A stretch of DNA of 64,000 bases from Thalia democratica (taxonomy: Eukaryota), in the NCBI GenBank assembly GCA_965202585.1, contig OZ241829.1, forward strand, positions 73,594,001 to 73,658,000, in the 5' to 3' direction. Below, piece after piece: positions 11,920 to 62,725 of this stretch. The translations under genes were made by a program, and so were the position numbers. The notes under the pieces were generated by a model. That model worked only from the letters and a program-made list of their open reading frames with translations. It was not told the origin of the DNA and did no database searches. How positions within the stretch are numbered: the stretch's first letter is position 1; the number at the start of each line of letters is the position of its first letter.

Positions 11920-12101
11920 AAGATGGCGACCGTGTTTTAGCGTAAACTAGTTTGAGTTATTCAGCTTCAAACTGCTGCTTCAGCTTTGAAAGAAAACGCT
12001 GTTTGTGACGTCACAAGCGACTTTTTCTTCCAAGCAGGCGAAGCGCTGAAGCTTCAGAGTTGATAAAGACATTTAAACCGCGCAGTGCGGTTGTAAAAAA
12101 T
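11920..12101 (+). promoter_or_regulatory. YY1-like/CRE/hairpin cassette (first half)
   Basis: AAGATGGCG 11920, TGACGTCA 12006, hairpin AACCGC-gcagt-GCGGTT 12076-12092, then GTAAAAAAT. Confidence 0.55.
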
Positions 12102-14764
12102 CTTGAAGGGAGTTAGAACGCATGGGTTAGAATACTGTAGTTGTTGCTAGAAAACTACAGTATGCTAGTTGCTTAGAATATTTGTTCCATAGAAAACAAC
12201 AAAAAAAAGTGTACAAAACGTTTAAGATTTCAAGTTTAAGCTTTAAATAACGCTGCTTTAGGTAAAGCTATGGTTAAGTTTATACCAAACCAAAATTAAA
12301 GTAAAAAAATTTAAGTTAATTTTGAAATTTACTCTGTTAGCTTAAAAAAAAGTTTTGTAGTTATGTAATTAAAAAAAAGATACATTCAAAATACAACTGA
12401 CAGTCGTTAAACACTTTGCAAATTTGATTTTTCTTAGTTTTTTTAGTTTGATATTTAAAACTATCCTGATGTTGGAACTGCAAGCTTAATCTCTGTCAAA
12501 TGCATCTTAAACATACACAAAGTTTTAATACATTTTTTCTTAGTTTAGGTTAATGCTGCTGCCGCATGAATTCTAGTACCATCTTAATTAAAACAATAGA
12601 TTTTCAACATTGTAAATAGAAAAATGTATTGAATGTAATTAACAAATCGAAAAGAAACGATAAAACAAAAAACAAAAACAAAAAGGGAGCAGACGCGCAA
12701 GCCACGCGAGCAGGTGAAGCTACAAGCGAGGAAACAAACACAGTTTACTGAAAACAAGAAAACACATATAGACAAAACGACCGCTGCTCGAGACAAAAGT
12801 TTTAAATTAGAGGATTATTTTTAATGTGTGTTTTTTTTTTGCACCCCATGGCAAAAAAAAACCGCGCGTCGCTACTGGATTGTAATATTTTGTGTTTTCG
12901 GTAGTAACGTCATATTTTCTCAACAGATCCACTTGAATTTTCACACCATAGACCTCATAGTTGTTTTGAAGATATATACCATTTTTCACGACCGTTAAGA
13001 AAGTAGTTTCGCCATAAACTTGTTTAAAATTATGCCGAGTGCGGCTCTAACTGTTTTCTTAAAAATGAATTTTAGTTTTAACATTTTTATGAGCTTAATC
13101 ACCGATTCAGCTATATTAGCTGTATCCGACATTAAAAAAATATCGAATATAAGATCAAAATTTTAAATGAACAAACTTAGTTGGAAAACTATTGACATTT
13201 ACAAATCCGAGAATACATAATTTGGCTCTATTTTTCGTCAGACCTACATATACCTACTATAAGAGCTACATAACTATTTTATGGCTTGGAGTTTTATAGT
13301 AAAATCCGTATATTAAAAGCATAAAAAAGTAAAAAAAAAACTAAGCAGGAAAGTAAACGACAATTATAAACTTGAGAAGGAATATTTTAGTTTTATTTAT
13401 TTCTTATTTCATCACTTTACAAATATTTTATAGATTAGGCTATTATAATAAATTTTATATCAGTTTAAAGCTCAATACCTCAGTTTATGTATAATTTTTT
13501 AGTTTTAGTTTTAGATAGTAAAGCTTTAACAGCGTTTCTCTAAAGCAAAATATATAACTATATCTTTTTGTAAATTTTTGTCTTTTATTTTGATAGCTTT
13601 GACCTCTACTTGAACAATATAAACGTAAGTTAAAAAAATTAGTAAATTTTTTTTTTATTTGAAAAGTTCTTCCACTTATACACTTACGTTTAGCGATAAA
13701 TATTTTTAAACGATTTTGATGTAACATTTATACCAATCACTTTAAATAATCCAAATTTTTAATTGTAAATGTTACGGCTTTTCAACATATGTATGATATG
13801 TGGTTTTGTTGATTATACAAGAAAATATATTAACAATGTTACAGTTATTGTAAAATTGCTAAACTTAATTAAGTTACTTTTTAAAAGGCAATTATACACT
13901 AAATTTGTTTTTTTTTCTAAAAACTGCATTATTTAGTAGTAAAATAATAAATTTTAACTCACCAGAACGTTCATAGCTTCGTTGTTGAATTCAAACTGAC
14001 GTGATTACTTCTTTTGCGGCTGACTAGGTTGTAAGAAAATATTTATTTGTAATTTTATTTTACATAAGCTAGTTTAATGCTGTTTTTTTATTTAAACTAT
14101 TCTGATAGTAATTAAACTTTTAGTAGGTAATTTTCTACAGTTGTTAAACCATATGTATATGACACAATTGCTTTAAACACTTATTCTACTTTAATTAATA
14201 ATTTAAACCTGATAAATAATACTTTCATTTAAATAAAAACTTAGGTTATTGTGTTTAAACAATACAAACCTTATTTTATTGAAATAATGTAATAAATTTA
14301 TTTAGAAATTTTATTTATTCATTTTTTAAAGCATATACTTTCTGTAAAAAATTTTTCTAGTCCATGGTTTTAAACAGCCTTAACACTATAAAGTTTAAAG
14401 CTTCAATTAATAACTTAAGCTTCTTCTAACATTTTGGTTTTAATTATTGCCAATAAGAATGCAAAATAAAAAATACAACATGAGTTCAGCAAAAAAAGTT
14501 TTAATCCTAAAATAAGATGGCAGCTGTGATTAAGTGCGTAAATAAGTTTAAATTTTTTCAATCTGAAACCACCTTTAGTTTTTTTTAAGTTTTCAAATAT
14601 CTAATCTTAAGTTAATAAAAGTCTTGTTAATGTTTTACAGTTTCAATCAGCCACTTAAGCTTCTCCTAGTAGTAAATTGCAATTTAAAAAAATTATTTTC
14701 TGCATTAAAAAAATGCCATTAAAATTCCAAAGTAAATCAATAAAATTTTGTGTCAATAACGTAA

Positions 14765-15114
14765 AAGATGGCGACTATGTTTAAGCGTAAAATTAACTTT
14801 AAAATTTCAAGCTGCTGTTTCAGCTTTCAATGGAAAGTGTTTAGTGACTTCACAGTGCTTTAGCTTGAAGCGGTTATCATACGTCACAAGCAACTTGTAC
14901 CGCCAAGCTTGAAACTGAACGAGTTCTGTAAAGCCGTACGAGACGACTCTAAAAATTAAAAATTGATGATTTAGAGGAAAAGTTTATTAGTGTAAATACA
15001 TCGCCAAGCAGCTTCAAACTGTTTCATAATGTGTATGGGTGCTGTCGTGTTTCTACTGTCGTGACGTCACATTTTACGGCTTTTTTTTATGACGCGCGTT
15101 TGTAAATTTGAGAG
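14765..15114 (+). promoter_or_regulatory. Full CRE/hairpin cassette
   Basis: AAGATGGCG 14765, TGACTTCA 14845, TACGTCA 14880, hairpin 14932-14948, TGACGTCA 15062, TGACGC 15090, TTGAGAG 15108. Confidence 0.55.
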
Positions 15115-15974
15115 AACTTTTCATGGACTTCCGGTTTCGTAGTTAACTTTTTAAATGAAGTAGAAGATGGCAGAAGAACAAAAAAAATCGCCCTCAGCTA
15201 AATACACGTTTCTGAAACAGGTTGAACAAGTGATTCAATACAAGACGGAGGTTAATAAAACTTGATTTTTTTTTTTAAATTAAGACATTTACTGAGTTTC
15301 ATCGCTAAACGAACACATAAAATGTAATTAATATCCAACTAAATTTAAGAGAATTAACAAAAAACTGTTCACAAAGTATTCTTGCGCATCTGCCACAACA
15401 TTTAAGTGGTTTTTCCTGTTGTTTTGTTAAAGCAAATAAGTATAGTTTTACTTTATTTTTTAAAAAATATCCATTTTAAAAGCAAAAATATGTAACTTAA
15501 ACAAACATGACATGTTCACCTTAAAAAACCAAGTTGATAAAATAAAAAAAACAACGACAACATTTTATTTTGTTACTAAACTTCTTATAGGACTAATAAT
15601 TTATAAATTTTATGACTAAGAAGCGAGTAGTGTGTAAAAAAATAAAGTACTTTAAGTTTTTTTTTGGTTATGACGTCATGATTACAGTATGGATAGAATA
15701 TATTTTGATAACTATAGTATATGTAGTTGGTAAAAGCAAGTATCTGAAACATCATATAATTTAAGTGAGTCGTTGCAAATGAAAGCTAGGTTGAACTACT
15801 TCTGTTTTTAGGTGTAATGTCATAGTTAAGGAGTAGATTTATTTGTATTTGTTTCACCTATATTACTCTGAAGTAATTTTAAAGACATATACGAGTTTTA
15901 ATAACAATAAAGCAAGTAGTTTTAACACAAAATTATTTGAATTTATGTCGAGTGCAGCTCCAAATGTTCAGCAT

Positions 15975-16193
15975 TAACCGCCGAAGCTTGAAGCTGAACG
16001 AGTTTGGTAAAGCCGTACGAGACGAATCTAAAAATTAAAAATTAATTATTTAGAGGAAAAGTTTATTAGTGTAAATACATCGTCCAGCAGCTTCAAACTG
16101 TTTCATAATGTTAACGGGAGCTGTCGTGTTTCTACTGTCGTGACGTCACGTTTTACGGCTTGTTTTTATGACGCGCGTTTGTAAATTTGAGAG
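15975..16193 (+). promoter_or_regulatory. Duplicated 3' part of the 14.8-kb cassette
   Basis: Close copy of about 14900-15150. Degenerate hairpin 16011-16027, TGACGTCA 16141, TGACGC 16169, TTGAGAG 16187. Confidence 0.5.
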
Positions 16194-16831: not shown

Positions 16832-19800
16832 CAGGGGTCGGCAGGCAGTTGGTGGTCGCGGGCCAAATTTCAATTTTACAAAGTCTTCGCGGGCCGCAGT
16901 TTTAGTTTTAGTGACATTTGAATAATCTTTTGGTTTTAGTTTTATTCACACTAGAGAAAAGTTTTACTTTAATTCACCTTATCATTTTAAATAACTTTTA
17001 GCTATACATAGATTGACTATTTAAATTAAATTAAATAAAATTAGAATAAAATTTACATTGACTAATATACTTAAGTGTTTATAAACTATGTACTTTCATA
17101 AGCACTTACTAAGTTAAATTTAATACTTTTGTATTTTTACATACAATTTAACTCTCTATAAAAACCAAACTTGAAAGACAATTTATTGGTTACTTTTATA
17201 TATTTGTTATATTATCAACCCCTTTTTTCATATTTCTAAGAATATTAACTTCAAAAAAAAAGTTTTTGCGTGTTAAATAGTTTACATTCATTAGAAAATT
17301 TAGTAATTAGTTATTTCAATAAAATTAATACCTGTTTGTATTCCAGAAAGCTAGAACAAATTCTTTAAAATAATTAATTCTCGAATACTTAAATAAAATA
17401 TCTTATTAGTAACTAGTCTTTTACATGGTTGTCACTTAAAAAGCTAAAATGTCTGAGTTGTATCAAACCAGCCTAAGTTCATTAAAAGTTTAAAAAGCTA
17501 GTAAATCGTTGTAAATCAAGCTTAAGTACCTAGTAAAAAATATCATCATCATTAAAAAGTACACAAAGTGTAAAAAAAAAAGAAAAAACTACAATTAGTA
17601 AACTACACTACAGTCATAAAAACTATTCTGGGAATTCTAAGATTTATTTAAAGTGCTTGAAATAAAAGTTTCACACACATCTGAGTTTTCAAGCTTTTAA
17701 AGTAGCCTGTTTGTGTAGCAACCCAGTTAAAATAAAGTTCACAACATAAAGAAATAACAAAACTTATTAACAGTAAACAAGTTACTTGCCAAAAAAATAT
17801 AAGTCAGCTGGAATAGACAATTGACTTTCTTAAATATTTTTAACAAAAGTATAAAACTTAATTGAGTCATTAGCGAAGAGAAAAACCTCTTTTTTATTAA
17901 GCATTACAGCAGTTCTTTATCTGCAATAAGAATTTAAAAATATTAGTTGTAAAATAAAAGACGAAAACAAAAAAAAAAAACGTTAGTTAGGAGTTATTGC
18001 GAGAATCGATAAAAAAACAAATCACCAAAGTCAGTTCCAACAAAGCACATGATTATCTTCAGCAACTACAGAATTATCAGAAAAAAGTTGTTAAGGCAAG
18101 TTATAAAGTAGCAAAATTTATTATTAATAATGAGATACCGTTTATAATTGAAAACTTTTTCAAAGAACTTTTGTGGGCAGTAATGAGAAACTTTTGTTTA
18201 TTTCTTCAATGACAACAAAAAGTCCTATTTAGAAAATGCATTAAGGTTATAAAGTCGCATAAATCAAATTATGACTTTAATCAATATGTTAAGATGAGAG
18301 CACTGATAGAAAAACTATTGCTCATCTGAGAATTTTCATTAGAGTTGTTTTTTTAACTTTGACACTTTAGCATAATTTCTTGGTTTAGTTCAAACACGAA
18401 GCACAACAATCGGTGAAATTTTACAAGTAAAGGTGCAATGCACCAAAAGTTTTTAGAAGTAAAATTCCTTCTTTTATTTTTAGTATAAAGTTAAATTAAA
18501 GTTTAAAAAGTGTCTTATAAAGTATATCAATATTAAAAACACTGTTAAGCTACTTTAGTATATTTTTTAATAAAGAAATGTTTATTTGCTAAATTTTTTG
18601 TGTCAATTCGAAATTTCACTACTTTACATGTAAAAATTGTTTGAAACTCCAGGCTTTTTCAAAAATTCTCAAATTTCAAGTTTTTTTCCAAAATTTTTAA
18701 GCATAAATTTTCAAGTTCAAAGCTTGAACTTGATATATTATAACATATATTATAACTGAAACTAACACTTTGGGTTGAGCAAAACTTACATCATAAGTTT
18801 AATTTGCCACTCTTTTAAGCAAAAAAGCCAGCCTGAATTAACAAAAACACTCCTGATATTTTTGTATACAAAAAACAATTCTAGCCAAAAACTTTTAAAA
18901 TGCCTTAGTTGGCCTGATATTTGAAGTCTTCAAATAGTGATAGTCTGAGTGTGTGTCAATGTTTATAAACTATCCCTAAGTCTAGTTTATATTAAATAGA
19001 TAGCTCCAAATAACAGCAAATGTGTGTATTGATATGCAAAGCATAAAAGTTAACTTAGTTTGACAAAATCAATATTTGAAAAATGAAAATGTATACCTAA
19101 CAAAAACTATATTAGTTTATGTCATATATATTGTATTAATTGTGTCTGTACAAATTTAGATATTACATGTAGAAAAAATAAACGTAGAAAATTGTGCATA
19201 AACTAAACTTAAACTAACTAAAGTATTTTATAAAAAGTGGTTTAAAATATGAGCAATTTTTTAAGTTGGTGTGCATATAAATTAGTTGAAGTGCAAAGAA
19301 AACTTCTAAAAAATTAAAATGTGTCAAAACAAAACTTAAATAAACCTTTTTTTCTTATTACTATACACTAAAACATAACATTTACAAATAAAAAATATAT
19401 AAAAGAAACTTAGGTATAAAAAATATTGGAAAGAATATCTAAGCTATAAATAAATGACACTTTAGTGAATTACTGTGCATTACTTTTGTACAAAATGGGA
19501 GACATTTGCATTTAGTTTATTTGATAAATAGGTATAATATAACTAACTTATTAAAATCAAGCACTCTTTTTTTAGATTATTACTTGCTGTTGTAAAATAG
19601 AAGTTATTATGAAACTCAGAAAAATATTCTGTTAGAATGCTAATCTGTCTTTTTCACATTTTTAAATTAAAGTAGTAACTTCTTCTAATTATTTTTAAAT
19701 GTTATACAGAGACTTAAAACCAAACTAAACGAATTAAATCGAATTACTGAAAAAAATTTTACTTGAAATATATTTTTGCTCAGCGGGCCACTTTTACATG

Positions 19801-19925
19801 CTCGCGGGCCACAAAATTTTCTTTCGCGGGCCGCATTCCGTTCAAAAAAATAACGTGCTCGCGGGCCGCAGATTTACCCTTCGCGGGCCGCAATTGGCCC
19901 GCGGGCCGCAATTTGCCGACCCCTG
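16832..19925 (+). mobile_element. Decayed hAT transposon, Buster/Spin (Charlie-like) group
   Basis: TIRs CAGGGGTCGGCA / TGCCGACCCCTG, subterminal CGCGGGCC repeats at both ends, internal transposase remnants. The flanking 8-mers differ (GTCTAATC vs TTCTAGAA). Confidence 0.9.
17997..18310 (+). pseudogene. Fragmented hAT transposase
   Basis: ORF remnant KASYKVAKF...PF..E.FFKE resembles the ASY.VA...KPF..GE..KE block of Spin/GTF2IRD2-type transposases. GAT GAG AGC ACT GAT (DESTD, first catalytic Asp motif) at 18293-18307. Many stops and frameshifts. Confidence 0.75.
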
Positions 19926-20104
19926 TTCTAGAATACTAAAATATACTGAATTTATCACGGTAGAGGTTGTTTTACACAATGAAAAACAAAACATTAACAC
20001 AAAGATTTTGGGCCGGAGAACTAATTAAAAAGATAACTGTAAAACGAGGTACTGAGACGGAGCATAAATGCACTGGGCGACAACTTTACGTGGATTTCTT
20101 TTTA

Positions 20105-20310
20105 TTAGGTTTCAATTTTGCACGGGTGTCAATTTTGACGTGAAGTCACTTTTGTACGACGTCACATCTTTACGGTTTTCATTTTGCATTAAGCATCTTG
20201 TCTAGAAATTCTCTTGAAAAACTTTTTACGAAATTTAAGAAGCAAAATTTACATGGTGCAAAAGTAACCACTTGACAAAACTGAATACACGTGAAAATGT
20301 GACCTTTCGC
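20105..20310. mobile_element. Small foldback-like remnant (TTTTGCAC / GTGCAAAA modules), also carried in U2-U4
   Basis: Left-hand TTTTGCACGGGTGTC modules face right-hand GTGCAAAAGTAAC modules. Copies at about 29865-30070, 39190-39510 and 55385-55590. Confidence 0.5.
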
Positions 20311-20607: not shown

Positions 20608-21589
20608 CTGTAAAAAAAAAATTGAATATTTATCTAAATTAAGTTTTAATCATATTATAAATGAGATTTGCGTATTTTGCTTTATAAATAGTTTAGCATT
20701 GCCGTTTAAACCTACACTTAAAGTTATGATTTTTTATTTTTATGAGTTGACTATCGAAGCTACTTTTCAGGTTTTTTATAAAAAAAATTAAAAATAACAT
20801 AATATTATTGTATTATCTTACTAAATATTTAGTTTTGTTTATCTAAAAAGTCTGCACAAGAATGGAGTGAAAATTAAAGAGCTACTAAACGATCAACCTT
20901 AAGTACAATTTGTTGATTTAAGAGGTTCACTCAGAGAAGTAAATTTTGTAAGAGTGTAAGCTGTTGTTGGTTTTATTTTAAAACGATCAACTCTTATCGT
21001 TAACAATTGAAACTTTCAGACTTGAGTTTCATAATAGTTATCAACTTTGGAATATTAAGAACAAATTGTAATTCAAGCTGAAGTATTGTGACGTCAGAAA
21101 AAATTCTAAGGTTACAAAGTTGATAATTAATTAAACGATGTTAGTCTAAAGTTTATGGATATCAACTAATATATAAAAACTTAAGTATTGTTGTTTGACG
21201 TTAAATCAAATACACTGAAGTATTCAAAATGCCATTTTTTTCGAAAATAAAAATGAGAACGGATATTACAACTGTAGATAAATGTCTAAAACGATAACAT
21301 TTGACTTTAAAAAAGGGTTTTGTTTAGAATTAAAAAACATGTGAAACTGAAAAAAAAAAACAATTTTATTGTTGCCAAGGCTCAACTAGTTATATAATAT
21401 GTTTTTTATTTATATGCGTACTCGATGAAAATTTATTGCAACTTTGTCAACATAAAGATGATATAAAATAAGATAGTAAAGCGTGTAAAAGTCGAAGTTA
21501 ACTATGTTTCTGTCAACACTGCGTATTGAAGCTTAAATAACAATGCGTCTTGACAGCATTGATGCAACAAAAGAAAACCGCGCAACGGA

Positions 21590-21845: not shown

Positions 21846-23737
21846 CCTTTTAATGATTTTATGATTTGAAAAAGTTATTTATTACAAAAGTGAACTGTTA
21901 GTTAGCGCTAGATGATAGTCAAAACAAAATAACAATTAAAATGCCGTTCAAAATAGTCACTAACCATTAAAAACTGGTAATATGATAGACAAAAAACACT
22001 CAAGGATGGTTTAAAATTTGTTTTAAAGTATATATATTTTTAATTACTATCTTTTCATCTAGTAGCACGTGTCCAAAAGAAAATTATCGGCAACGTTGAA
22101 GCAAAAAATGAAAATTATATTGCAAACGTATAAACAGTGTTAATCTTGGCTCAAAAGTAGCAACAAATGAATCATTTGGATTAGAAATCAATAGTCGAAT
22201 TGTAAGTCGTCAGGCATGTTTGCTCGTAAACTTCAACAGTTAATTAAGTGTTCCCATGTTGTTTATGGTTTGTTGCGTCTATGTATGCAGTAACTTGCTA
22301 TAAAAAATGTTGAACTTTTCAAAGTAAAAAAATAATCTTCTACCTACGATGCCTCCGTCATACCCTTAGATTTGTATGAAAAGAAAAATCACCTACAAGA
22401 AAAATGTGTGAATGATGATTTGTCAGTGATGAGGAATGTTTAAACGTACTATTCTTACTACCTTGCACTTCACCGTCACTCAGCACTCGCTTTGCTGTTT
22501 CAGTTATGCTCTGGAAATAGGTGGTGAGCGATTCCAGAAGTATCAAGATTGTTTGTAAACGTAGCCGAAATCGGTCGGTTTAAGGACGTTAAAAGCTTAA
22601 ATAATAGCAGTACCGAGTTAGATAAGCCAATGATCGCGACAAACGGGGATTTTGATAAAGAATAAAGTTGAAAATAAAAGAATACAACAAAATAAGAACT
22701 TGATGCAGTGGAAGAAATTAGAAACAAGGTGAAATTAATTTTCATGTGTATTTTTTATTTCATGTGTATTTTTTATTCGTTAATGTTATTTAAGCCATCA
22801 CTGTGCTTAAAATTATTTGTAAAAAAATATATAAAAAAGTTTATTATTTGCTTTGTATACACATACTCGATTTCAGCGGAAAAAGTGCTTATAATTTTAA
22901 GCAATATTCGTTGAGAGCTCTCAGAAAATAACCTTTACCAAAAACTCTGAAGAAACTTGATTTTTTTAGTATACCAACTTATTACCTTAAGTTTGTACCA
23001 ATAATAACTGAGAAAAAACATTATTAAAAATTTGTAAAGTTTAGTAAAAATACTAACAGTGTAGAGTTAATTTTATACCGGTTAAGTTATTTGAGAAAAA
23101 TAAATTTTTCACTTATAATAAATACATGTTTAACAACCGTACATTCTAGATAGCTTTGCAGTTGTTATTGTTGCACACAGAAAACTAAATTTAGATGACT
23201 TGAAATCCATAAAAACTTTGCAAAACATTGCTTAAGTCCAACTTCAAAAAAAAAAAGGTTGTACTCTAAATTGTCAAGAAGTCAAAATGTTATTTCTGAA
23301 CAAATTCAAGACTTATTTTTGTTTTGAAAGAGAACCAAAATACTTAAGTTGGTTCATATTAACACTTTTTGCTTAAAGAAATTGATCCCCGTTAATAACA
23401 AATACGTGTTTACAATGAAGTTAAGAAGAACAAAATATTAATGTTAAAACATCAGTAATAAACAAAGAGGAAGAAGTAAAACAAAAGGCCTATTCAAAAC
23501 TAGTGTGAAAAGTTTAGTAAACAGCAAGCTATTGTCAGTAACAAGTGCTCAAGATATAGTTTCAATAAAAGTTCTTTCGAAAAAGCTTTGAGACAGTAAC
23601 AAATAGAAAAATTTATAGGTACACCCAAAACATACAGTACACAGATCATAGTTTCTCACAACATTTCACAGCATTAAAATTAATTAACTTTAGTTTTTAT
23701 TAAGGTAAATTATATAAAGGTAAAAATATACTTATTA

Positions 23738-24097: not shown

Positions 24098-24291
24098 AAG
24101 ATGGCGACTTTGTCTAAGCGTAAATGTGTGATATTAAACTTTGGAAGCGAAGCCTCGTTTAGTGACGTCACACAACTTCAGCTTAAAGAAGTTTTGTTGC
24201 GTCACAAACAGCTTTTACTTCGACTGCCTAAGCGAAGCTTGAGACTGAATCAGCAAGTTTCTTAAAGCCGTACAAGACGACTGTAAAAATT
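24098..24291 (+). promoter_or_regulatory. YY1-like/CRE/hairpin cassette (first half)
   Basis: AAGATGGCG 24098, TGACGTCA 24163, TGCGTCA 24198, hairpin 24266-24282, then GTAAAAATT. Confidence 0.55.
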
Positions 24292-25365
24292 AGGATTCAA
24301 GTGTGAAGAATGACCAGTAGCAGCTAATTTTGTACAGTTTTTTATTTATTATTTTAATAACTTTGAATTCTACTTGTGTTATATAAACGTGAGTTTAAAT
24401 AAACGTAGTATAAACTTTTTTTTATTTAGAAAAAGTTACTCAACTTTAACAATAAGTACAGTGATAAATATTTTTTACCGACCTTGATGTAGTATTTGTA
24501 CAAATTTCTTTAAATTCTACACGGTAAAACTTTTCAACACATGTATAATATGTGATATTGTTAATTATTATTATTAGAGTTTATTATGCCTTGATAGACT
24601 CGGCCATTAAAACCTGAGCCGCTTAAAAATTAAAGAAGAAAAAAATATTAACAACGCTTTAGTTATTTTAAAACTATTAAATTTAGTTAAGTAGCCTTTT
24701 TAATGGCAATTATAGACTAAATTTGTTTTTTTTTTGAAAAAAATTGCAATATTTATAACTAACCAAAACGTTCATAGCTTTGTTGTTAAATCCGAACTGA
24801 CGTGACCACTTCGTTTGCGACTGACTAAGCTGTAAAAAATATATTTTAATAATTTAATTTTAAAATCTGTTTTAATAATTCTGTTTAATGTATTTTAGAT
24901 TTAAACAGATGTACCGAAGAAAAATTATTCTGATAGTAATTAAACAAATGGTAGGTAATTTTTCACAGTTGTTGAACCATATGTATATGAATAAAATTGC
25001 ATAAAACACTTCTTCTATTGTAATTTATAATTTAAATCGGTTTAAACAATACTTATATCGAAATAAAAACTCAAGTAACGGTGTTTAAACATTAAGAACC
25101 ATATTTTATTGAAATATCGTAGAAAATTTTATTGAAAAACTTGATTTGAAAAATAATTAAAATTTTTTTTTTTTGTTATAAAAGTTCAATGCTTTAAAGA
25201 TTATAAACTTGATAAATATTCAATTTCGAGTTTTCAAAAGTTTACTTGATATTTGCCAGTTTTTATTAACAACTTAAGCTTTTTTTATAGTATCATTTAA
25301 CATTCAATTAATACCAACAATAATAAAAAAACAGATCAATACTTAAACGTAGTTCAAGCGTAACA

Positions 25366-25696
25366 AAGATGGCGACTGTGTTTTAGCGTAAACTAATTTG
25401 TGTTTTTCAGCTTCATACTGCTGCTTCAGCTTTGAAAGCAAAAGCCGTTTGTGACGTCACAAACCGCTTTTGCCTCCAAGCATTCGAAGCGCTGAACCTT
25501 CAGAGTTGATTAAGACATTTAAACCGCACAATGCGGTTGTAAAAATTAAATAGTGCTTACAAACGCAGATTGTTCAAGACAAAGAGCATGCGGTGCAGTT
25601 TGGATCTGATTAGTATTGTAAAAGCGGGCGCTCGTGTGTTATGAACTGTGACGTCACGATTAACTAGTTTTAGTAAATGATGTAAGAATATGAGAA
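25366..25696 (+). promoter_or_regulatory. Full CRE/hairpin cassette
   Basis: AAGATGGCG 25366, TGACGTCA 25452, hairpin AACCGC-acaat-GCGGTT 25522-25538, TGACGTCA 25649, TGAGAA 25691. Confidence 0.55.
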
Positions 25697-48619: not shown

Positions 48620-48967
48620 AAGATGGCGGCAATACTTGAGCACAGGAAGTTTGCGATTTTTTAACTTAAAACTGCTGCTTCACAAAACTTAAGTGACGTC
48701 ACAAAACTTCAGCTGAAAAAAAAACTGTTTTTTACGTCACAAGCGGCTTTTACCTCAAGAACCGAAGCGTTAACGTTTCACAGAAAGCATGTTGGGCCGC
48801 GCTCGGCAGGCCTTAAAATTAATCCCTTAGAAGAAGACAACTTGAGCTTAATATGCGTGCTGCCACTTTGAACGTTACTCATACTATGAAGGCGTTCAAT
48901 CGTTGGTGACGTCACTTTAAATTCAATCTGATATATGACGCAAATTCAATCTGAAAATGTGAGAGAG
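48620..48967 (+). promoter_or_regulatory. Full CRE/hairpin cassette
   Basis: AAGATGGCG 48620, TGACGTCA 48694, TACGTCA 48733, hairpin 48794-48813, TGACGTCA 48907, TGACGC 48936, GTGAGAGAG 48959. Confidence 0.6.
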
Positions 48968-49492
48968 TTTTTTACGCTGCCTCAGTCTACCTGCTGTTTG
49001 GCAATTTTAATGTTTTATATGATTAAAATATAATAATAAACATAGCAATTAAGATGAAGTTGTATATGTAGTCAAGATAAATAAGTAAAACTATTAATGA
49101 TACTAAACTTGAATCTGTACGCAGGCTAATATGTACAAATACAAAAAATTAAGTTTAAGTATAATTTTAGGCCTAATAAAAATAATTATCAAGAGTAATT
49201 TTAAGCATGTATTTTGGCTAATAAAAACAAATTTAATTATAATCATTAAATTTGAATAACAGAAGTGTGAGATAGATTTATGAGACGCAGATAACAAAAC
49301 GAGTGAAAGTATGTAAACGTAATCCTCAATGGATCAACCATACTACAATATTAGACTTACACTGGACGAGCCGACGACGGTAACTATTAAGTTGTCGGTG
49401 TGTAGGAATCAAAAAAATATATATTATCGGATTACAATCCTCCTCACAGAGAGGAATACCTTTCCTTCCTCGATGGCTGTCATAAATGGGTC

Positions 49493-49706
49493 GTCACAGA
49501 GTGACACTTTAGCACGGAGTGACACTTAAGCGCGGAGTGACACTTTGGCACGGAGTAACACTTTAGCGCAGATAGACCTTTTAACAAGGGTCGTAATTTA
49601 AGAACGAAACAACACTAAACCACGGAGTGACACTTTAACACGGAGTGGCACTCTGGCACGGTGTGAAACTTTGGCTCAAATTGACATTTTAGCTCGGTGT
49701 CACTCC
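49493..49706. repeat. 18-bp module array (GGAGTGACACTTTRGCAC), foldback-family remnant
   Basis: Four tandem modules at about 49499-49570, further modules at 49620-49690, and an inverted terminal GTGTCACTCC. Confidence 0.75.
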
Positions 49707-52099
49707 ATTCTTACACTTATATCGTTTAAAAAACGATTATGTTTGATTTGACAAAAACATACCGAATGCTTATTTAATAAAAAAAATTGTTTAGTGTTTC
49801 AAAACAAAAGATAATCAATATTAAAATAATATTTTGTGTAAAAGTGTCACAAATTTAAACTAAGGAATCGAAATATATATATAAACAATATTTCAAACAA
49901 TTTGACTTATAAACTTTTAAAGCACTTTAGGGACAACGATAAGGTATGCTTTTACACCGAAACTTAAATTACAAAATTATTAGTTGTGTTACACCTAAAT
50001 TGAGTCATATAAGCATTATTTTTATGTTCAAGTAATTTAAAATACTATCTTAATAATACTTAGTTACTACAATAATAATACTACAATAAATGTGTTTTTT
50101 CTGTAGCGTAATTTATTGATGTACCACCTATTGTATATAAACAAAGTAAATGAAAAAAGCGGTGTAAGTAGAAACTATTACTATAAATTTAAATCAATAA
50201 TAAGCAAAAATATTTAATGGATGTAAAATAAATTTTAATGAAATAACTTATGTACAATGACAATAAATTAACTAACCAGAGGGTTCATGCTAATGTTCCA
50301 TTTTCATAGTTTCTGATTACAAAAGACGTAGTTGATTTTTTTTGTCGACTTAACTGTTAAAATAAAATTTGTTAAATAATTGTAAACTAATATAAGCTTT
50401 TTTATTGACATTTTAGAACTTATAGAACTACATTATGAATGTGGATCGTAAGCTGGTTGTTTGCTTCAACGGTTAAAAGTAGAAGTTAACAAACGAAGTT
50501 ATTTTTTAAGAGTTTTTGTTAACAGTAGTAGTACTGTACAGATAACTTAAAATATTCCATTTTTAATAACGAAAACTTTGTTTTAAATTTCAAGAAAAAA
50601 AGTTTGGAATGTTTATTTATTGGTATCAGTTAGCACAACGCAGAGTAAAGTAATTTTCTACAGTTGTTTAACCATATGTATATGAATAAAATTGCATTTA
50701 AACACTTTTTTTTTACTTTGATTAATAATTTTAATCGTTTAAACAATATTTTTAGTTAAAACAAAAACTTAGGTAACGTGTTATGAATAAAACACACTTT
50801 GAACAAACGCAATTTACTTTATTTTCAATAAAAATTCTTAGTTCTGAAGAAAGAAACTATTAAATCACGACACAAATAAAATCTATAAAAGTATCAACAA
50901 TCGTAAAGTTATATAAATACTAACATCAACTCCGCGATGTAGACGTTTTCTTTATTCTCGAAATTTGTGAATAAAACGCTGAACTTAATCGTAACTTTAT
51001 CGTACCGCGGAATAACAAAGTAATTAATTATTAAAACTAAGGAACAACTAACGCGTATTTAAAAGACAAACGCAAATATATACGCATTGAAATGAAGTTT
51101 ACTCCTTGAAATAACAAAAATATTTGTTTTTAATACTGTAAGCACGTCACGAAATATGCGTAAAACAGTTTACAACATCCGCTTTAAAATACGAAAATGA
51201 GATGTTAAAATCATTACAAGGTAAATTAGAGAAAACTATTCTAACTCTCTACGGTGTCATGAGAATTTTGAGGCTTTTTGATTGAGATTTAATCTTTTAG
51301 GTTGTTTAAACTTAACTGTATTAGAAGTCTGTTTGTATTTTAAAAATTTATTTTCTAGTAAAAATAAGATATCCTTTATAGCATTTTCCATTAATATATA
51401 AGCTCGAGGGATGTAGAGTTTTGTAGCTTTTTTATTCTTTATTGTCTTTTTTAGATAGTTTAGCATTTGTAAATAAATTAGCAAATAATTTTTGTGCACG
51501 AATAGAGTATAGTATAAAAATAACAAAAGCGCACTAACCCTGCATCTGCAGCAGCAATTGTAGCGTACACCTGCGAGGGATCCATTTCATCGACAACCTC
51601 AGCAGCGCCTTCAAGTGGCTCGTCTAGTTGCTGGATGTCTCCGTTTTATCGGTTGCTATATCAATAACACCGTTCAGATAGACTGTTAGAAATAATTTAT
51701 TTTGAAAAACTTACTATTAATTTTTAAAAAAGTATTAATTTAATTTTATATAGCCTTTGATTTAGGTGACGTTTTTGCTGTTCAGACAACTACAATAAAT
51801 TCTAAATGCAATCAGTCCTCGTTAAAAGTATCTCTACTCAAAATTGAAATTTCATTAACTTAAGTTGAAATTTAAATACTTTTTGATCAAATAACAGTTT
51901 TAGATTTGTTCATTGCTTTATTAAAAAAAAATTATACAAAAATAGTAGGTAAAGTAGTATTGTGTTTAAAAGTAATTTAGTTTTTATCAGTATTATAATT
52001 CAATAATTTTATTATTAAAAACTTAGTTTACAAAACCGCAAACTTGTTAACTTCACAGGACTTTTAACGTTCAACGGAATATTGGCTTACAAAACAAAG

Positions 52100-52390
52100 A
52101 GTCAATGTGATTTCAATAAAAAATAAAAAAAAAAGTCTCGTAACAGTTCACTTTCGCTTCACCAGCAAAGTTCGAGGCGAATTCAACGAAAGACTTAGAA
52201 TTCAAAGATTCATTCATTTCAAGCCATTTTAAATGGCTGTAAAACTAAGCAAATTACGAGGATAAATAAGAATACTCTTCGACTAGACACTCTGAACCCA
52301 ATTTGTGCAGTGAAATCGAGTATTTTCTGCACTCGGCCTGTGACGTAATATTTAAATACATACTTGTTTGTGACGTAAAAATTTGAGAGC
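52100..52390 (+). promoter_or_regulatory. CRE/hairpin cassette at unit start (first CREs degenerate)
   Basis: TTCACTTTCGCTTCACCAGC as at 27.6 and 36.9 kb, hairpin AGCCATT-tta-AATGGCT 52222-52238, TGACGTAA 52341 and 52371, TTGAGAG 52383. Confidence 0.5.
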
Positions 52391-54254
52391 TGCTCTTTTC
52401 TATGTGTTGTAAGCATGAGTTTTAGTGTTGATAAACTTTAAGCTTTTTTCTAGATACGCTTTAGTTGATTTCTATATATAGGTGGTTTTAATAGCCTTCA
52501 AAATGTGCATAGAAATTACGGAAGAAATGTGTTGCTATATTTTAAGCGTTAAAAACTTACTCACACTTTACGAAACTTATTGTCGATTCCTTTACTGTTT
52601 ATTGTCGTAAAAGATATTTGTAACTTTTATTTCATGAAAGATCACCAATAACAAAATAAAGTTTTTATCTTCGATTATCTAACGATTCAGAGTTATAAGA
52701 AAACCGACATATTTATCGTTAATAGCCTTCTTTATTTTCACATATCTTTCAGAATAAATTACCCCTGTTATCCAGTCATGCACAAATTTACAAAACACTA
52801 TTTAACTTATTCAACCAAGGATGACCACAGCTCAGTCAAAAAAGTAATTAGTTTTTACGAGAAGATTAATTATTTTTTTAATATCAGCCTAAGATAAGAA
52901 AAATATTTTGTTTTTGCAACGTGCACAAAACAAGCAAATTGATAATTTGGTTGTTAATGATCTTCGTCTTATGAAAAAAAAATAAAAACAATGAAATTAA
53001 AATATGATAAGTTGATTGAAGTAACCACTGGTGTAAAAAACCATTGGCATAACAATAATTTCAGTGCGAGTATAATGCCAAGCAAAAGCTTGTAATTTCA
53101 TAAGCACTTAACTTGTAGTAAATGGATGCGAACGTAGTAAGCTAAAAATGGTGATTAAACAAAAGAAGCAACACGTAAATATTGCAGGTAATAACATTAA
53201 AATTACTTCAGCATTTGTTAGAATAATAGGTCTTTAGCAATGTCAATATGCTATCAAAATAATTTCTTTTTGTGAAGACAGATATTTTGGTCGCTAACTG
53301 AAAATTTGCAGTTTGTACCAGCACTTTCCTATTTTAAATTTAAGAAAACAGTCAAATCAATATAATGTTTAATACAAAGTCTGTTATAGGCTTAAATCTG
53401 TTATTGCATACTTTCAATTAGAGTGGTGTTAGAGATGAAATGTCACTTTTTTTTTGTTGACGATCCAAAAAAAGTACTGATTTGGAGTACGAGATTATTA
53501 TTTAAGACTCAAGATCAAACATACGCACATTAGGTTAAATATTTAATAATTTATTATTTTGACAGATCGCTCGTTTTTTATATATAAGGAGTATTTTCAT
53601 TGAGTGACCACAAATAGTTGTGAAACATGATTATGATAAAAGGTTTGTATCAACATTCTAAGAACTAAAACGAATTGAATAACATTTTTGCATAGATCAC
53701 AATATATTTTATGTAAGGGCAATTAAACAACGTTAAACCGTGGCAAACTCTGGTTGTCAGTAACAAACATAGGATGATAAAAAGGTATATTTTACTCAGC
53801 TTTCCTGAATAGTTCGATAGAATTTCGTCATTGAGAATAAGGGTCAAGCTAATTATTAAATTGCCAAAGTATCGAAAATATTACAAGATAGTCTGAAGCT
53901 AGAAACACCAAAAGACGGCAAAGAATGCGTTAACGATTTTATTAAACTTATGCGCTGCTTCTGGCAGAGAAGACACAAGTCAGACTTAAAAAGAACATTA
54001 AAAGCAGGTAAAAAACTTTCAAACCCAAAAGAGCAAACAACAAAACCACAAGCTCAGAGACACATAACCCGACGAGCCAACGCCAGTCACGGATAGTCTA
54101 AACCTTCGACTGACAACGATGTTTGTTATTGGAGACAATGAAGATGCTGCAACACAGCAATTGTTGCTCATCAGCCACAAAAAAACAAGTCACGATGTCC
54201 TTTAAAAATACTGTCAAGAAACATAATGTAGTTAGTTTATAGTCTGCTGTACTC

Positions 54255-54305
54255 TCTAACGCAATATCTAACATATGACGTCATAAACCGTTTGTGATGT
54301 CACAC
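54255..54305 (-). promoter_or_regulatory. Short-spaced CRE pair (11-nt spacer)
   Basis: TGACGTCA 54276, TGATGTCA 54295. Confidence 0.45.
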
Positions 54306-55909: not shown

Positions 55910-57844
55910 CTGTTCAAAAAATAAATTGAACATCAAATAATTTTTAATCATACTATTAATGAGTTTTGCGTATTTTGCTTTATAAACAGTTTATCATTGC
56001 CGTTTAAACCTACAGTTAAAGTTATGTTTTTTATTTTATGAGTTGACTATCCAAGCTATTTTTCAGGTTTTTTTATACAAAAAACTAAAAAAACATAAAA
56101 TTATTGTATTTCTTAACTAAATAATTAGTTTTCAATATTTAAAAAATTTACACAAGAATAATTAAAGAGCTAACACACGATCAACTTTTAGATTCATAGT
56201 TTGTTATTATATTTGTTGATTTAATAGGGTCACTCAGAGAAGTAAGCTTTGTAAGAGTGTAAGCTGTTGGTTTTACTTCTAAACGATCAACACTTATCAT
56301 TAACAATTGAAACTTTTCGACCTGAGTGTTTGTATAATTGACAAAAAATTTGATAACTTTTACTTCAAGCTGAAGTATTTTGACGTCACAAAAAACGTTC
56401 AGATTCTAAATTTGTGAATTAATTAAACCAGGTTAGTCGAAAATAAAATGGACATCGAGTTGCTATATAAAAAAATAAGAATTTTTGTATGATTTTAAAC
56501 TAAATGCACTGAAGTAATCAATTTGTTTTTTTTTTTTCGAAATTTATAATGAGAATGATAATTACAAATGTAAATAAACGTCTTATATAATAAAGTTTGA
56601 CTTTATAAAAACCAAGAGTTGATTGATGGCAAACATAATTCGGTTTGAGGACGTTTGCAGAGAACTCAAAGAGCTTGAATACCAGCACTGATGGGTAAGA
56701 TGAGCCAATAAACGCTACAAATGGGAATTTAATTAAAGAAAAAAGTTGAAAGAAGGAGAAAACAACAAAGTAAGTAAGTGATGCGGAGTAAGAAATTAAT
56801 TTTCATATATATTTGTTTTTTATTACTATTCATTAATCTATTTAATCCATCACTGTGCTTTAAATTATGTGTTTTTTTTTTGCAAGTAGTTTTATTTGCT
56901 TCAATATACTATGTGAGCTTATAGTTTAAAACAATGACCTGTCGATATCGCAAGCTGACAGCAAACAACCATTGTCAAAAACGCAGAAGAAACTTAAAAT
57001 TAAAAATTTAACAACAAATTATCTTAAGTTACTACAAATAATAGCTAAGAAAAACTACAATTAAAGTTTGTGAAGGTTAATAAAAATACTAACAGTGCAA
57101 ATTAATTTTATACAGTGTAAGTTGTTTGAGAAAGCAAAATTTTTCACTTAAAATAAATACATAAGATTTAAGAACCGTAAATTCTAAATAGCTTGGCAGT
57201 TGTTAATGTCGCTCACAGACAACTAAATTTAGAAGAACGAATTTCCATAAGAACTTTGCAAAACATTGCTGAAGTCCAATTTCAAAAAAAAGATATTGTA
57301 CTCTAAATCGACCAGAAGTCAAAGTGTTACTTCAGAACAAATCTAAGATCGATTTTGTTTTCAAAGTTAGTCAAAATACTTGAGCTGGTTCATTTCGACA
57401 CTTTTCGCTTAAAGAAGTTGATCCTCGATAATAACATACTTGCTTACAATGAAGCATAGAAGCACAAAATATTACTGGTAGCATCAGTAATAAACAAAGA
57501 GAAAGAAGTAAAACAAAAAACCTATTCAAAATTAGTTTGAAAATTTTAGTAAACAGCAAGCTATTGTCAGTAACAAGTGCTCAAGTTACAATTTCAATTT
57601 TAGCTCTCTTAAAAAAGCTTGTAGAAAGTAATAAATAGAAAATTATATAGATAAACCATAAACGTACAGTACACAAATCATAATTTATAACAAAAAAGTT
57701 TTAAACTTAATTAACTTAAATTTCACGTAAAGTAAATTGTCATAAATATTAGTTCTAAACTAAACTAATTAACCAATGACGAAAACACTAACAAAAATTA
57801 ATTCTTATAATTATAACAACATGATTATAAATATAACAACTTAC

Positions 57845-57944: not shown

Positions 57945-60069
57945 CTGTTAAAAAATAATTTTTACTTATTCTGTTAAATTTGTAGAATATTGTTTGGTAC
58001 AAAGAGTAGTCTAGCATTTGAAGCTGTAATAGTTTTTCATTTTAGATCGTGATTATCACATTAAAAAATCACTTTTTATATTATCTTATAAAATAGCTGG
58101 CATAAAATTTCTAAAAAGTAATATACTTTTTGTGAGCTCAGCCGAAGTCTAGAGGAATAAAGTTAACTTTAAATATATATATATATAACAACGTCAGTTT
58201 CAATAAAGAGGGTAATTTGCAAATTACTGCTATTATATTCGTACAAGTTTGTTTCATTCGGACGTTTTCGGACAAACATATTAATAAACTAAAATTACCA
58301 GTTTATTGAACAAAAAAGAAAATGCTCCAAACGTTTTGATTTCACAACCTGTGTGTACAAAAACCTCTTAGTCATCGAGTTGTACACGACATCTTAATTT
58401 TTGAACTCTTAAGAAGTATTTATAATTATGCTATATGATTTGAACTGTGCAGAAGCAAGGTTCAAGTGAGATAATAACTTGAAAATAATTATTTTTAAAG
58501 CGCTAGATTGTTGGAGTTAGTTAGTTAAGTCATGATATATTACAATTGAATTTTTAAAGAATAAGTTTGAAAGTTGATTATTAATTTCTTTTTTTTTTAA
58601 GTTTTTAAACTTCAATATAATTTCTAGCTTTTGAATCTGTCTTTACAGATCGGTTGTTCTAAAAGTCTTCATGTTGTGCAGATGACTTACAAAATCAATT
58701 AACTTTTAAACATTCAAACATTGTACTTTTTATAGTATTAAGCAGATTATTCTTATAAATCTTTACAGTTAGCTCATTTTCATAAAAAGACAGTCAACGG
58801 TTTCAAATAGCTTAGTATCTAATATGGGTACGACTCAGCGTTTAAGGCAAAATTGATATACTTATTATAATGTGTACAGAACATAGTTTTATAAAGTCAA
58901 ACAAGTAGCTAAAACTTGTGGCAACTCTGCCTGTAATACCAAGTGTCGTATAAATCAACAGACATTGTAAGTAGCTCTTTTATTGTTTACAACAAAATCA
59001 ATCATTTAGCTTATCCAATACTTCGGGTGGACAATCTCTTCAGTCAAGACAAACATCTAACCAAACACGTACCAACTTTCAAACGTAAAATTAACACTCG
59101 CGTAAATTAACATAAAAAGTATATTAGCCTCCTACGACCACTTTTTTAATTAAAACTTTTCAATCGGTTTTTTTTTCTGTAGTTTATAAATATTAGTAGG
59201 CGAATGATCGGAGCTTCGGATAAATTATTGAAAGTAAATTTTTTAATTATTTTACACAATGAGTACAATTAACCATCCTTTCATTAAGATCGGAATATCG
59301 CAAAAGAGATGTGGACATAGAATCACTAAGTGCCAAGTTACGTGCAATTAGCATTTTTAACTGATCCATCTTCGTCAAAAGCAGATCTTTGTATTTTAAA
59401 AGTTGATGATTTTAATTTTTAAAACAAAGTAGATGAACACAAGCGTAAACAGGAGTTTGTTTTTACCCACTTAATGCGAAACACACTAAAATATAGGATA
59501 TCAGTCCAACTTTTCATGGGATTAAACAGAGTTTTGGAACTGTAGATAAATTCATGTGACGCAAAAGATTAAACACTAGAGAAGAAGCGAGATGAGTGAA
59601 AAACACATAAAGAAGCACTCGAAGTAGCAATCTCGAAGGAACAGCCTAGAAACCCGGTTTATAATATTGAAAAACCAAAAATATTGCTAAACAACTTTCA
59701 TTTATACACCGTTTGTCAACCGTGACGCATGTTTAACGAGTATATCATTGTGCAGTAACAATCAAAAAAATCCCGTTTGTTCGCAGTGAGTGACGGTTAG
59801 TTGTAAAGTATCGAAAACTGTGATGATTAGGAAGTTAAACAAACAATCAGACCAACTGACAACAAGTATTAATGCGTCAGAATAAATTTAACAGTCAAAA
59901 AATTTAAAAAAATAAACAGAAATTTCGTGATTACGAAGAATTTAAACATGAAAACAACAAGTCTGCTCATGCAAACAACTAGCTAGAAAAAGCACCACTT
60001 ACAAACCAACGGGGCACAAAGTCAACATAGGGTTGTTGCACAAAGATTGTCAACACAAACACCTTACTT

Positions 60070-61020: not shown

Positions 61021-61428
61021 AAAAACTAATCAAAGTACAATCTAAAGGAAATTTGTTACTCAATTTAGATAATAATTTGATTATAATCAGTGAGAGCGGA
61101 TTTCTAAAAAAGAGTGTTTATCAACTTAAGTATAGACAACCCTGCCCTATTGAACAATGTTTTGCATCGACTGACAATTAGATACAAAACGTAGTGCGCA
61201 CAGTAGCTTTTTGAAAAACTATAGGGGGGACGATTGCTGTTTAAATTTCTTAAAAGCGATTATTACGAAATTTAGCTTTAAAAAGCTGAAAAAGATCAAA
61301 GCTACACAAATGTACTCAACTTCATTTGTTTAAGACCATTTAGTATAAAACAATTTAAGTAGTAATTCTCAGTGAGCTTAATTAATGAGATATGTCAGCT
61401 TACATGTTTTATAAACATGAAAGCTTAC

Positions 61429-61524
61429 TTGGAGTGTTTGCATCATTCCATCAACTGCATCTTTCAACATTAGTGTCAGCTTGAAAGAATGTTGATTCCT
61501 ACCACAAAAACAAGCTGCCATCCT
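61429..61524 (-). other. Exon-like segment, family E paralog (acceptor mutated to CAA)
   Basis: Minus strand ORF MAACFCGRNQHSFKLTLMLKDAVDGMMQTLQ ends at ACTCCAA|GTAAGC. Confidence 0.35.
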
Positions 61525-62382
61525 TTGTTAAATTATTGAAAAATTAACATTTAATATATTTATTTTAATATAGATAACAGCTTTTCTTTAATTTTTAAAT
61601 CAATTAAATTAGTTTAATTCAAATTACTGGCTTCTACCACTAACGTATACCTATTTTATCTTAATACATTAATTTGAAACTAGAGATTTTCTGTTAATTA
61701 ATATGCAGTACATTTCAATAACACCACACGTCACCACTGCTTACAACATATTAATACAAATTAAAAATATGTTACTTAAAAACTTTGTGTGTTTTTGAAA
61801 AGTAACTTAATTATCAATACGTAACACAAAAGAAATCGTATTTAAAAGTTCTGATTTAAAAATCGTAGAATTCATTTTAACAGTATGTGTAAGTCTAACA
61901 AAGTATAGATAATTTAAAAAAACTCAATATTGCTTAAAATAAAACTTAATACTTTCGTTGTATTCTATATTTAACGATAAAATTGTAATTAAGTACTACT
62001 TTAGTTATAGTTTGACTAAGCAGTTTCAGTAAAATATGTAATATTTTAAATAAAAAACGTATTTCTCCGTATTAGTTTAGCTACTTTACAATAGTTGTAA
62101 AAACCAATGACATCATGTTTAAAAATGTATTTAAAATATTAGCTAATAATGTCAAAATTCTAACTTAAATAATTATATTGAAAATTTCAATGTTGCATTT
62201 ATAGATAGTTATAAAAATATTATTTTCAATTGTTGTTGCTAAACATACAAAGCAGATAAAACATTGAGAAAATTGTCTGACGATACAAAAACATTTATCC
62301 CGTTATTTCTCTATAGTTTTTGAGTTATAAGTAAACTAAAAAAATCTCAAGAAATACTTATTTCAAAAAGCCGCGCATAAAA

Positions 62383-62725
62383 TAGATGGCGGCAACACTT
62401 GAACGCAGGAAGTTTGCGATTTATTAACTTAAAACTGCTGCTTCACAAAGCTTAAGTGACGTCACAAAACTTGAGCATTAAAAAACTATTTGTTACGTCA
62501 CGATCGGCTTTTACCTCAAGAACAGACGCGTTTAAGTTTCACAGAAAGCATGTTGGGCCGCGCTCGGCAGGCCTTAAAATATTATGAATTCAACAAAGAC
62601 AGCAATATGATAATTAAGCGTGCTGCCACTTTGAACGTTACTCATACTGTGAAGGCGTTCAATCGCTGATGACGTCACTAAAAAGTCAATTTGATATATG
62701 ACGCAAGGAAAAAATGTGAGAGAAT
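62383..62725 (+). promoter_or_regulatory. Full CRE/hairpin cassette (paralog of 48620-48967)
   Basis: TAGATGGCG 62383, TGACGTCA 62457, TACGTCA 62494, hairpin 62555-62574, TGACGTCA 62670, TGACGC near 62700, GTGAGAG. Confidence 0.6.

Follow-up and report, generated by a model that had tools for sequence, protein, structure and literature searches.

A covarying mini-hairpin of uniform orientation in CRE-rich cassettes of the tunicate Thalia democratica, tentatively read as the closing stem-loop of a non-coding unit

Genes for the Sm-class small nuclear RNAs (snRNAs) U1, U2, U4, U5 and U7 finish with a 3' terminal stem-loop and a 3' box, and the ends of their transcripts are Integrator-dependent. 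The 3' stem-loop of histone messenger RNAs (mRNAs) has the consensus GGCYCTTYTNAGRGCC, with a 4-nucleotide (nt) loop and an ACCCA flank. In nematode operons the Ur element, a short stem-loop followed by a motif like a 5' splice site, lies in the spacer before a trans-spliced gene. The term "Ur element" is used in PMC7668243. The element described here is a hairpin with a stem of 6-7 base pairs (bp) adjoined by an A-rich box, present in 16 copies in 64,000 nt of the genome of the tunicate Thalia democratica (assembly GCA_965202585.1, contig OZ241829.1, positions 73,594,001 to 73,658,000 of the forward strand). This whole stretch, of ~28% GC, is called the window, and all coordinates refer to it. 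The hairpins lie in cassettes carrying the cyclic AMP response element (CRE) sequence TGACGTCA. Judged from comparison of the copies, the element is real and structure-constrained; it may form, in plus-strand RNA, the stem-loop with which a conserved non-coding unit ends.

All 16 copies lie on the plus strand, where the coordinates below are given. The 13 hairpins listed by a first-pass annotation of this DNA, together with a degenerate 14th, were found at the places and with the arms that it had assigned to them. They hold as sites but not as independent ones, because the copies form six paralog groups (A, 2 copies; B, 3; C, 4; D, 3; E, 2; F, 2) within segmental duplications of 72-92% identity; in a self-comparison, most of the region from 10 to 64 kb consists of paralogous blocks. 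A covariance model, R1, was trained on the 14 copies and scanned along both strands with filters off. It recovers 14/14 training copies on the plus strand, while its minus-strand hits all have E >= 1.7, the best of them being the reverse strand of the F1 site described below.

Arms follow the general pattern ARYCRY/RYGRYT and enclose loops of 3-7 nt. Group A comprises A1 (12076-12101; AACCGC/GCGGTT, box GTAAAAAAT, 37.9 bits, -8.6 kcal/mol) and A2 (25522-25547; AACCGC(A)/(T)GCGGTT, box GTAAAAATT, 45.1 bits). The arms AGCCGT/ACGACT of group B, which form C.A on the plus strand and U.G on the minus strand, are found in B1 (14932-14957; box CTAAAAATT, 45.3 bits) and B3 (24266-24291; box GTAAAAATT, 42 bits). 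B2 (16011-16036; 40.3 bits) has decayed to AGCCGT/ACGAAT, as the annotation had noted, and the module upstream of it has been replaced. The four members of group C share the hairpin AGTCGT/ACGACT with loop GTTCGAG and box TTTGAAATT: C1 (21662-21689), which is the top conserved island of the four-way alignment, C2 (31351-31378), C3 (32911-32938) and C4 (40849-40876). Group D is the most varied in its arms, with AATTATT/AATGATT in D1 (27704-27729; one U.G, box GTAAAAATT, 35.8 bits), AGTCAT/ATGATT in D2 (36988-37015; one G.U, box GCAAAATCG, 26.2 bits) and AGCCATT/AATGGCT in D3 (52222-52247; box GTAAAACTA, 40.2 bits, folding z -2.8). E1 (48794-48822) and E2 (62555-62583) have the same hairpin, GGGCCGC/GC[A]GGCCT, with box TAAAATTA.

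The model added two plus-strand sites on which it had not been trained, F1 (model span 44045-44089) and F2 (58410-58452). F1 (44059-44084; AGTCAT/ATGACT, loop GTAAG, box TTAAAAATT) scores 38.1 bits with E = 8e-6 and a folding z of -3.1. Being untrained and found in the expected context, it validates the family independently. F2 (58424-58449; AATTAT-gctat-ATGATT, 15.8 bits) is a decayed paralog of F1 that has lost the box and the CREs; compared with F1, changes in both arms have turned G-C into A-U, and one U.G is present.

MAFFT, which aligns on sequence only and is blind to structure, places the 14 stems in identical columns between a T-rich left flank and, on the right, a box of the form [G/C/T]T[A/G]AAAWT. 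In this 14-copy alignment 90.5% of the cells pair and 5 of the 6 pairs show two-sided changes, which bears out the swapping between pair types seen in the first-pass annotation. None of 500 shuffles matched the observed pairing, and sliding the partners by 1-3 columns reduced it to 21-55%. The hairpin is the sole consensus helix found by RNAalifold in a 130-column alignment from the upstream CRE to the box, and again in the minus-strand alignment from the hairpin to the downstream CRE.

The influence of shared descent was assessed with a tree built from the flanks only, which recovers the groups. On this tree 25 parsimony changes fall in the 12 stem columns, and the null consisted of 5000 runs in which the same number of changes per column was put on random branches. 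Watson-Crick pairing is 92.7% (89/96 cells) against 66-68% expected and a null maximum of 84%; with G-U counted, 95.8% of the cells pair against 84-87% expected (P = 0.0004-0.005). The covariation is thus significant beyond phylogeny. AT-biased decay alone does not explain it, since the stem changes go both compositional ways: T-A became C-G in D3 and A, and G-C became A-T in D1, F2 and A. Compensatory changes in excess of phylogeny and base composition, the generic mark of a structured RNA element under selection, are present here, with template switching as a possible alternative source. Outside known RNA families, to our knowledge, few short hairpins have kept their arms paired over several independent two-sided changes; this one holds a fixed position in a repeated, CRE-rich architecture. 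Selection on structure rather than on sequence, as proposed in the first-pass annotation, is supported by the excess over the null and by the place of the hairpin among the longest identical islands shared by paralogs.

Conservation along the cassettes lies on the left side and ends with the box. Within the four-way alignment of group C no island is better conserved than the hairpin region, 41/51 columns being invariant there against 40% overall. Among the longest identical runs between paralogs are 39 nt over the C hairpin (C2/C4) and 45 nt over the E hairpin (E1/E2), both ending at the box. Alignment of the -60..-1 flank gives z = 7.4 within groups and 1.76 between groups, and that of the +10..+55 flank 4.3 and 0.2, respectively. 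A1/A2 homology ceases 7 nt past the stem, at the A-run. In E1/E2 the ~38 nt after TTAAAAT are scrambled although the surrounding unit is ~87% identical. With this left-sided conservation ending at the box, hairpin and box delimit a conserved block on its right. Homology crosses the hairpin into both flanks in groups B, C and E.

The window has 33 exact TGACGTCA sites where base composition predicts ~0.4. Twelve lie upstream of a hairpin, 7 lie downstream at 93-113 nt and 14 are without hairpin. The first-pass annotation had a hairpin 32-79 nt downstream of the CRE wherever the latter is recognisable; a hairpin does follow 12/33 exact sites, at a gap of 32-109 nt, but the rule is not general, 14/33 sites being hairpin-free. 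The upstream module is an oriented series of AAGATGGCG (YY1-like), CTGCTGCTTCA, one or two TGACGTCA and CACAAGC-GCTTTTAC, found in groups A, B and E and partly in C and D, and followed after 45-60 nt by a T-run and the hairpin. Examples are the modules of A2 (25366-25473, plus strand), with AAGATGGCG, CTGCTGCTTCA, TGACGTCAC and GCTTTTGC, and of E1 (48620-48753, plus strand), with AAGATGGCG, CTGCTGCTTCA, two CREs and GCTTTTAC.

An exact or one-mismatch CRE follows the hairpin at 93-113 nt in A2, B1, B2, C3, C4, D2, D3, E1, E2 and F1, while C2 has a two-mismatch CRE-like CTACGTCA at a similar distance. A1, B3 and D1 keep hairpin and box with no downstream CRE. Most downstream modules continue with a second CRE-like site, then GTAAA..TTTGAGAG or GTGAGAG, and then a pyrimidine run. 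On the plus strand the module of B1 (15062-15125; TGACGTCA, ATGACGC, GTAAATTTGAGAG, CTTTTC) begins 113 nt past the hairpin, and that of E1 (48907-48975; TGACGTCA, ATGACGC, GTGAGAGAG, TTTTTTAC) begins 93 nt past it; the module of F1 (44179-44240) consists of TGACGTCA, TGACGTTA, AATTTTGAGAG and a pyrimidine run. The oriented motifs of upstream and downstream modules all point along the plus strand.

Several further observations concern the CRE sites. They are nearly all paired, 18-38 nt apart (4085/4122, 5483/5520, 27587/27617, 28761/28780, 36875/36901, 38104/38123, 46130/46148 and 60081/60099 are examples), and are often part of extended palindromes such as TTATGACGTCA...TGACGTCATAA. The TGACGTCA 8-mer is self-complementary, so two copies on one strand could form a stem of 8-11 bp. 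At 28641-28790, 38002-38130 and 54101-54300 a CRE pair is followed by a minus-strand TTAGAGAG with no hairpin, an arrangement that resembles the downstream module in minus orientation; a 43-nt run is identical between 28761 and 38104. In D2, F1, F2 and D3 (37237-37282, 44295-44332, 58646-58690 and ~52400) a pyrimidine tract and CAG precede a common exon-like block, AT[G/C]GTTG.T...AATGTGCA, that lies ~120-140 nt beyond the downstream CRE pair and in which the ATG is not conserved.

The hairpin is best read, at a rough probability of 35%, as a plus-strand RNA stem-loop that would close a conserved non-coding unit and direct its termination or the formation of a non-polyadenylated 3' end, or else bind a protein. 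The orientation of the motifs, the edge in conservation and most of the wobble pairs favour this reading. The putative unit would span ~150-190 nt and comprise AAGATGGCG, CTGCTGCTTCA, one or two TGACGTCA, GCTTTTAC, ~45-60 nt of intervening sequence, a U-rich run, the hairpin and the box [G/U/C]UAAAAAUU. If it is transcribed with the plus strand as the active one, hairpin and A-rich box would mark an RNA end, leading to a non-polyadenylated 3' end or to termination of the unit, or would be bound by a protein. The modules form a head-to-tail array, and the hairpin precedes the next CRE pair by ~100 nt. Canonical poly(A) hexamers (AATAAA, ATTAAA) are found no more than 40 nt from 4/16 hairpins and in 41% of random windows; they are not enriched, so any RNA ending at the hairpin would be expected to lack a poly(A) tail.

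Several results weigh against this reading. The downstream CRE gap (mean 105 nt, sd 7) is tighter than the upstream one, and F1 has no upstream CRE and only a CRE pair 103 nt downstream, which together tie the hairpin more to the downstream module. The stems are short and individually weak: single hairpins fold at -0.5 to -10.8 kcal/mol with z of -3.1 to +0.4, values not unusually stable, so the evidence is one of position and covariation and not of energy. B1 and B3 conserve hairpin and box despite having no plus-strand fold. The plus strand offers no canonical Sm site, no known 3' box spacing and no Rfam match. The sequencing runs that cover the locus behave as DNA, with flat ~45x depth and short contigs, and display neither splice-like joints nor RNA ends; a fourth run gave nothing.

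The choice of strand was left ambiguous by the first-pass annotation, with the C.A of the B stems fitting the minus strand and two other copies the plus strand. The ambiguity persists. The three B copies have no plus-strand fold because of the C.A mismatch, and on the minus strand B1 folds at -7.7 and B3 at -5.1 kcal/mol; D1 and D2, now joined by F2, have no minus-strand fold and form a weak plus-strand hairpin through G.U pairs. By their wobble pairs, three lineages (D1, D2, F2) speak for plus and one (B) for minus, a difference that is not significant.

Compared with snRNA genes, the cassettes likewise have a short promoter-proximal unit ending in a small stem-loop, with a U-rich run adjoining and an A-rich box after it, and are without poly(A) signal enrichment. 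They differ in having no Rfam snRNA match and no canonical RAU(3-6)GR site, the plus strand providing only AUUU(U/C/A)A. Their box begins 0-1 nt past the stem, unlike the snRNA 3' box, located 9-19 nt beyond the mature end; a TTAGA-like motif follows at +14 to +25, though not in every copy. The cassettes have CRE and YY1-like promoter motifs in place of a recognised proximal sequence element, and the stem sequence varies between copies where snRNA paralogs keep it. The snRNA-like 3' stem-loop with 3' box, one option of the first-pass annotation, stays a candidate reading. With the histone mRNA 3' stem-loop the element shares a 6-bp stem, conserved single-stranded flanks and, on the favoured reading, the role of a non-polyadenylated 3'-end signal, and purine-rich stretches 15-30 nt downstream of several copies recall the histone downstream element. 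The consensus GGCYCTTYTNAGRGCC and its 4-nt loop are absent, loops are variable, and the window has no histone gene; with arms ARYCRY/RYGRYT, loops of 3-7 nt and no Rfam match, the hairpin was rejected as a histone stem-loop. Likeness to the Ur element lies in the short stem-loop, the donor-like GUAAAA at once after it and the ~100 nt before the next unit; the phylum and the motif are other, the G of GU is not conserved and a spliced-leader 16-mer was not found in the window.

The main rival is a minus-strand small RNA of the Sm-class type, ~70-110 nt long, that would use the downstream CRE pair as promoter and end with AAUUUUUA(C/G) and the hairpin. It would account for a hairpin-CRE gap held at 93-113 nt across the stretch with the poorest sequence conservation, for the pairing of the B copies on the minus strand only and for the retention of only the downstream CRE pair in F1. 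Read on this strand, the box is AAUUUUUAC/AAUUUUUAG directly before the terminal stem-loop, an order of AAUUUUUA and hairpin that resembles the 3' domain of U4 and U7. The AAUUUUUA(C/G) site is present in A, B, D1 and F1, but its U-run is followed by A and not G, and it is broken in group C (AAUUUCAAAG). D1, D2 and F2 are unfolded on the minus strand, D2 in spite of both CRE modules being intact, and A1, B3 and D1 keep hairpin and box in the absence of the CRE that would promote the RNA. The motifs of both modules are all oriented along plus and Rfam has no match on either strand. A minus-strand RNA appears unlikely, although it is the strongest competitor of the plus-strand stem-loop.

Less probable is a palindrome acting at the DNA level with no RNA role, either as a spacing or structural element between CRE modules or as an inverted repeat that template switching during replication, and not selection, keeps perfect. 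Poor cruciforms are expected from stems of only 6-7 bp closed by loops of 3-7 nt, which argues against it. Neither strand folds in every copy, a T-run ahead of the stem and an A-run behind it give the element a rough symmetry, and its distance from the CRE pair is set, all features that fit a DNA signal. According to PMC8794818, hairpin stems are reported to arise and persist through template switching, with changes that look compensatory; the process could be the source of those seen here. A protein that reads a palindrome would, nevertheless, conserve the half-site sequence and not complementarity alone. Hairpin and ~10-19 nt of single-stranded flank are identical in paralogs of 72-87% identity, pointing to purifying selection beyond the repeat itself, and by lineage the intermediates of the G.U type exceed those of the A.C type.

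The hairpin might instead be the last 17-19 nt of a non-coding exon, with the box as a 5' splice site (GUAAAA) that the stem presents or masks and the TGACGTCA sites as exon marks. This version ranks lower still and is improbable. GT stands directly after the stem in A1, A2, B3, D1 and D3 and GC in D2, this motif (GTAAA..TTTGAGAG or GTGAGAG) also closes the downstream module, and D2, D3, F1 and F2 continue with a pyrimidine tract, AG and an exon-like block. GT is nonetheless found in only 5/16 copies and GC in 1/16, the first position being T or C in C1-C4, E1, E2, F1, F2, B1 and B2. The C and E hairpins with their boxes are among the longest identical islands despite the lost G, no conserved acceptor ends the putative intron in E1/E2 or D2/D3, and the open frames around TGACGTCA sites are not of unusual length, with a median of 50 codons where random positions give 46.

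A transposable-element terminus (Helitron 3' hairpin, long terminal repeat or retroposed small RNA), suggested by a small GC-containing palindrome near a repeat end in one pair, A1/A2, whose homology stops at the A-run just past the hairpin, and by a DNA contig depth indicating ~4-20 similar cassette copies elsewhere in the genome, is very improbable: the Helitron ending raised in the first-pass annotation was checked and there is no CTRR 10-12 nt past the stem (CTAA is seen only in B1 and B2, at +1), fixed offset of that length or A|T insertion context, no TG..CA ends were seen at A1/A2, the one boundary examined and without a search for target-site duplications, homology crosses the hairpin in B, C and E, and the copies all have one orientation inside larger duplicated blocks.

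Comparison with known families gave no assignment. Rfam 15, searched at the gathering threshold and at E <= 10 with the whole window and with 400-nt slices on both strands, has no match at any cassette; at the gathering threshold the window as a whole is free of Rfam families, and a transfer RNA (tRNA) search of it found none. Individual likenesses were rejected one by one. An iron-responsive element, which has a CAGUGN loop on a 5-bp upper stem with a C bulge, was considered for CAGTGC, which is found only in A1 and out of pairing register, A2 having ACAAT there. Likeness to a tRNA T-arm or B box is limited to the group C loop GTTCGAG, a U1-like ACTTAC is variable in position, and a C/D box small nucleolar RNA hit was a chance match (20.7 bits against a gathering score of 50).

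No coding signal accompanies the cassettes, as paralog comparisons have no third-position bias, and a protein word search with the open frame across E1 gave no candidates. Only one open reading frame (ORF) of at least 110 amino acids exists in the window, inside a very high-copy repeat. The CpG observed/expected ratio, ~1.0 window-wide and 1.26 in the cassettes, is uninformative on a CpG island. The group C core had no exact match in the metagenome contigs scanned. A degenerate pattern of CRE, gap, box and arm hit 56 loci in public contigs, one of which has the complementary second arm (metagenome contig Ga0056123_1063354, 1-1636). Over its 1.6 kb this contig has 8 TGACGTCA sites, set out in repeated units, and next to a CRE it carries AGTCGT/ACGACT as a perfect hairpin; it was rejected as a homolog, being an unrelated CRE-rich repeat that may come from another animal. 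In the literature nothing relevant was found on TGACGTCA in tunicates or in exons, or on salp genomes.

The remainder of the window contains other repeated features. The region 25700-27500 (also 34017-34803) is a very high-copy repeat with a word depth of 5,000-550,000 against ~45 for single-copy DNA; its short tandem units read as Cys/His-rich pseudo-ORFs (GHFCT...), and the repeat contains the long ORF mentioned above. An 18-nt tandem repeat (CGGAGTGACACTTTAGCA-like) at 49500-49700 and 63250-63360 in the E units creates spurious open frames on both strands. An isolated GC-rich island at 19745-20166, of up to 61% GC, heads a repeated 4-kb unit and recurs at ~29.7, 39.0 and 55.2 kb; it may be a repeat. 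Another conserved island, TTTAGTAAACAGCAAGCTATTGTCAGTAACAAGTGCTCAAG (41-57 nt; 23513-23553, 42780-42836 and 57538-57594), is identical in three paralogs of 80-83% identity. The conserved island TTTTGCGTATTTTGCTTTATAAATAG (TATA-like) is present in four units (20669-20716, 30409-30453, 39875-39916 and 55942-55986), ~1 kb upstream of group C hairpins. A common non-coding repeat with conserved core AGTAATTTTCTACAGTTGTTAAACCATATGTATATGAATAAAATTGC lies upstream of several cassettes (10945-11276, 13812-14316, 24629-25147 and 50644-50800), and its depth suggests 15-100 genomic copies.

The significance of the element depends on which reading is correct. Were it a product of DNA-level function or template switching, it would be a clean example, provided by nature, of covariation that arises with no selection on RNA, and a caution for covariation-based RNA discovery. 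If the hairpin marks RNA ends, it would define either a signal for non-polyadenylated 3' ends or a family of small RNAs, new in both cases, in a chordate relative that has been little studied. In a bolder and unlikely version, RNA polymerase II would transcribe a genome-wide family of very small genes, each with its own promoter and all with the hairpin as their constant tail; a CRE pair, a poorly conserved body of ~100 nt, a U-rich site and the stem-loop would give a non-polyadenylated RNA with a variable region. If true, this tunicate would have, in dozens to hundreds of copies, a class of RNAs not described before that is guide-like or snRNA-like.

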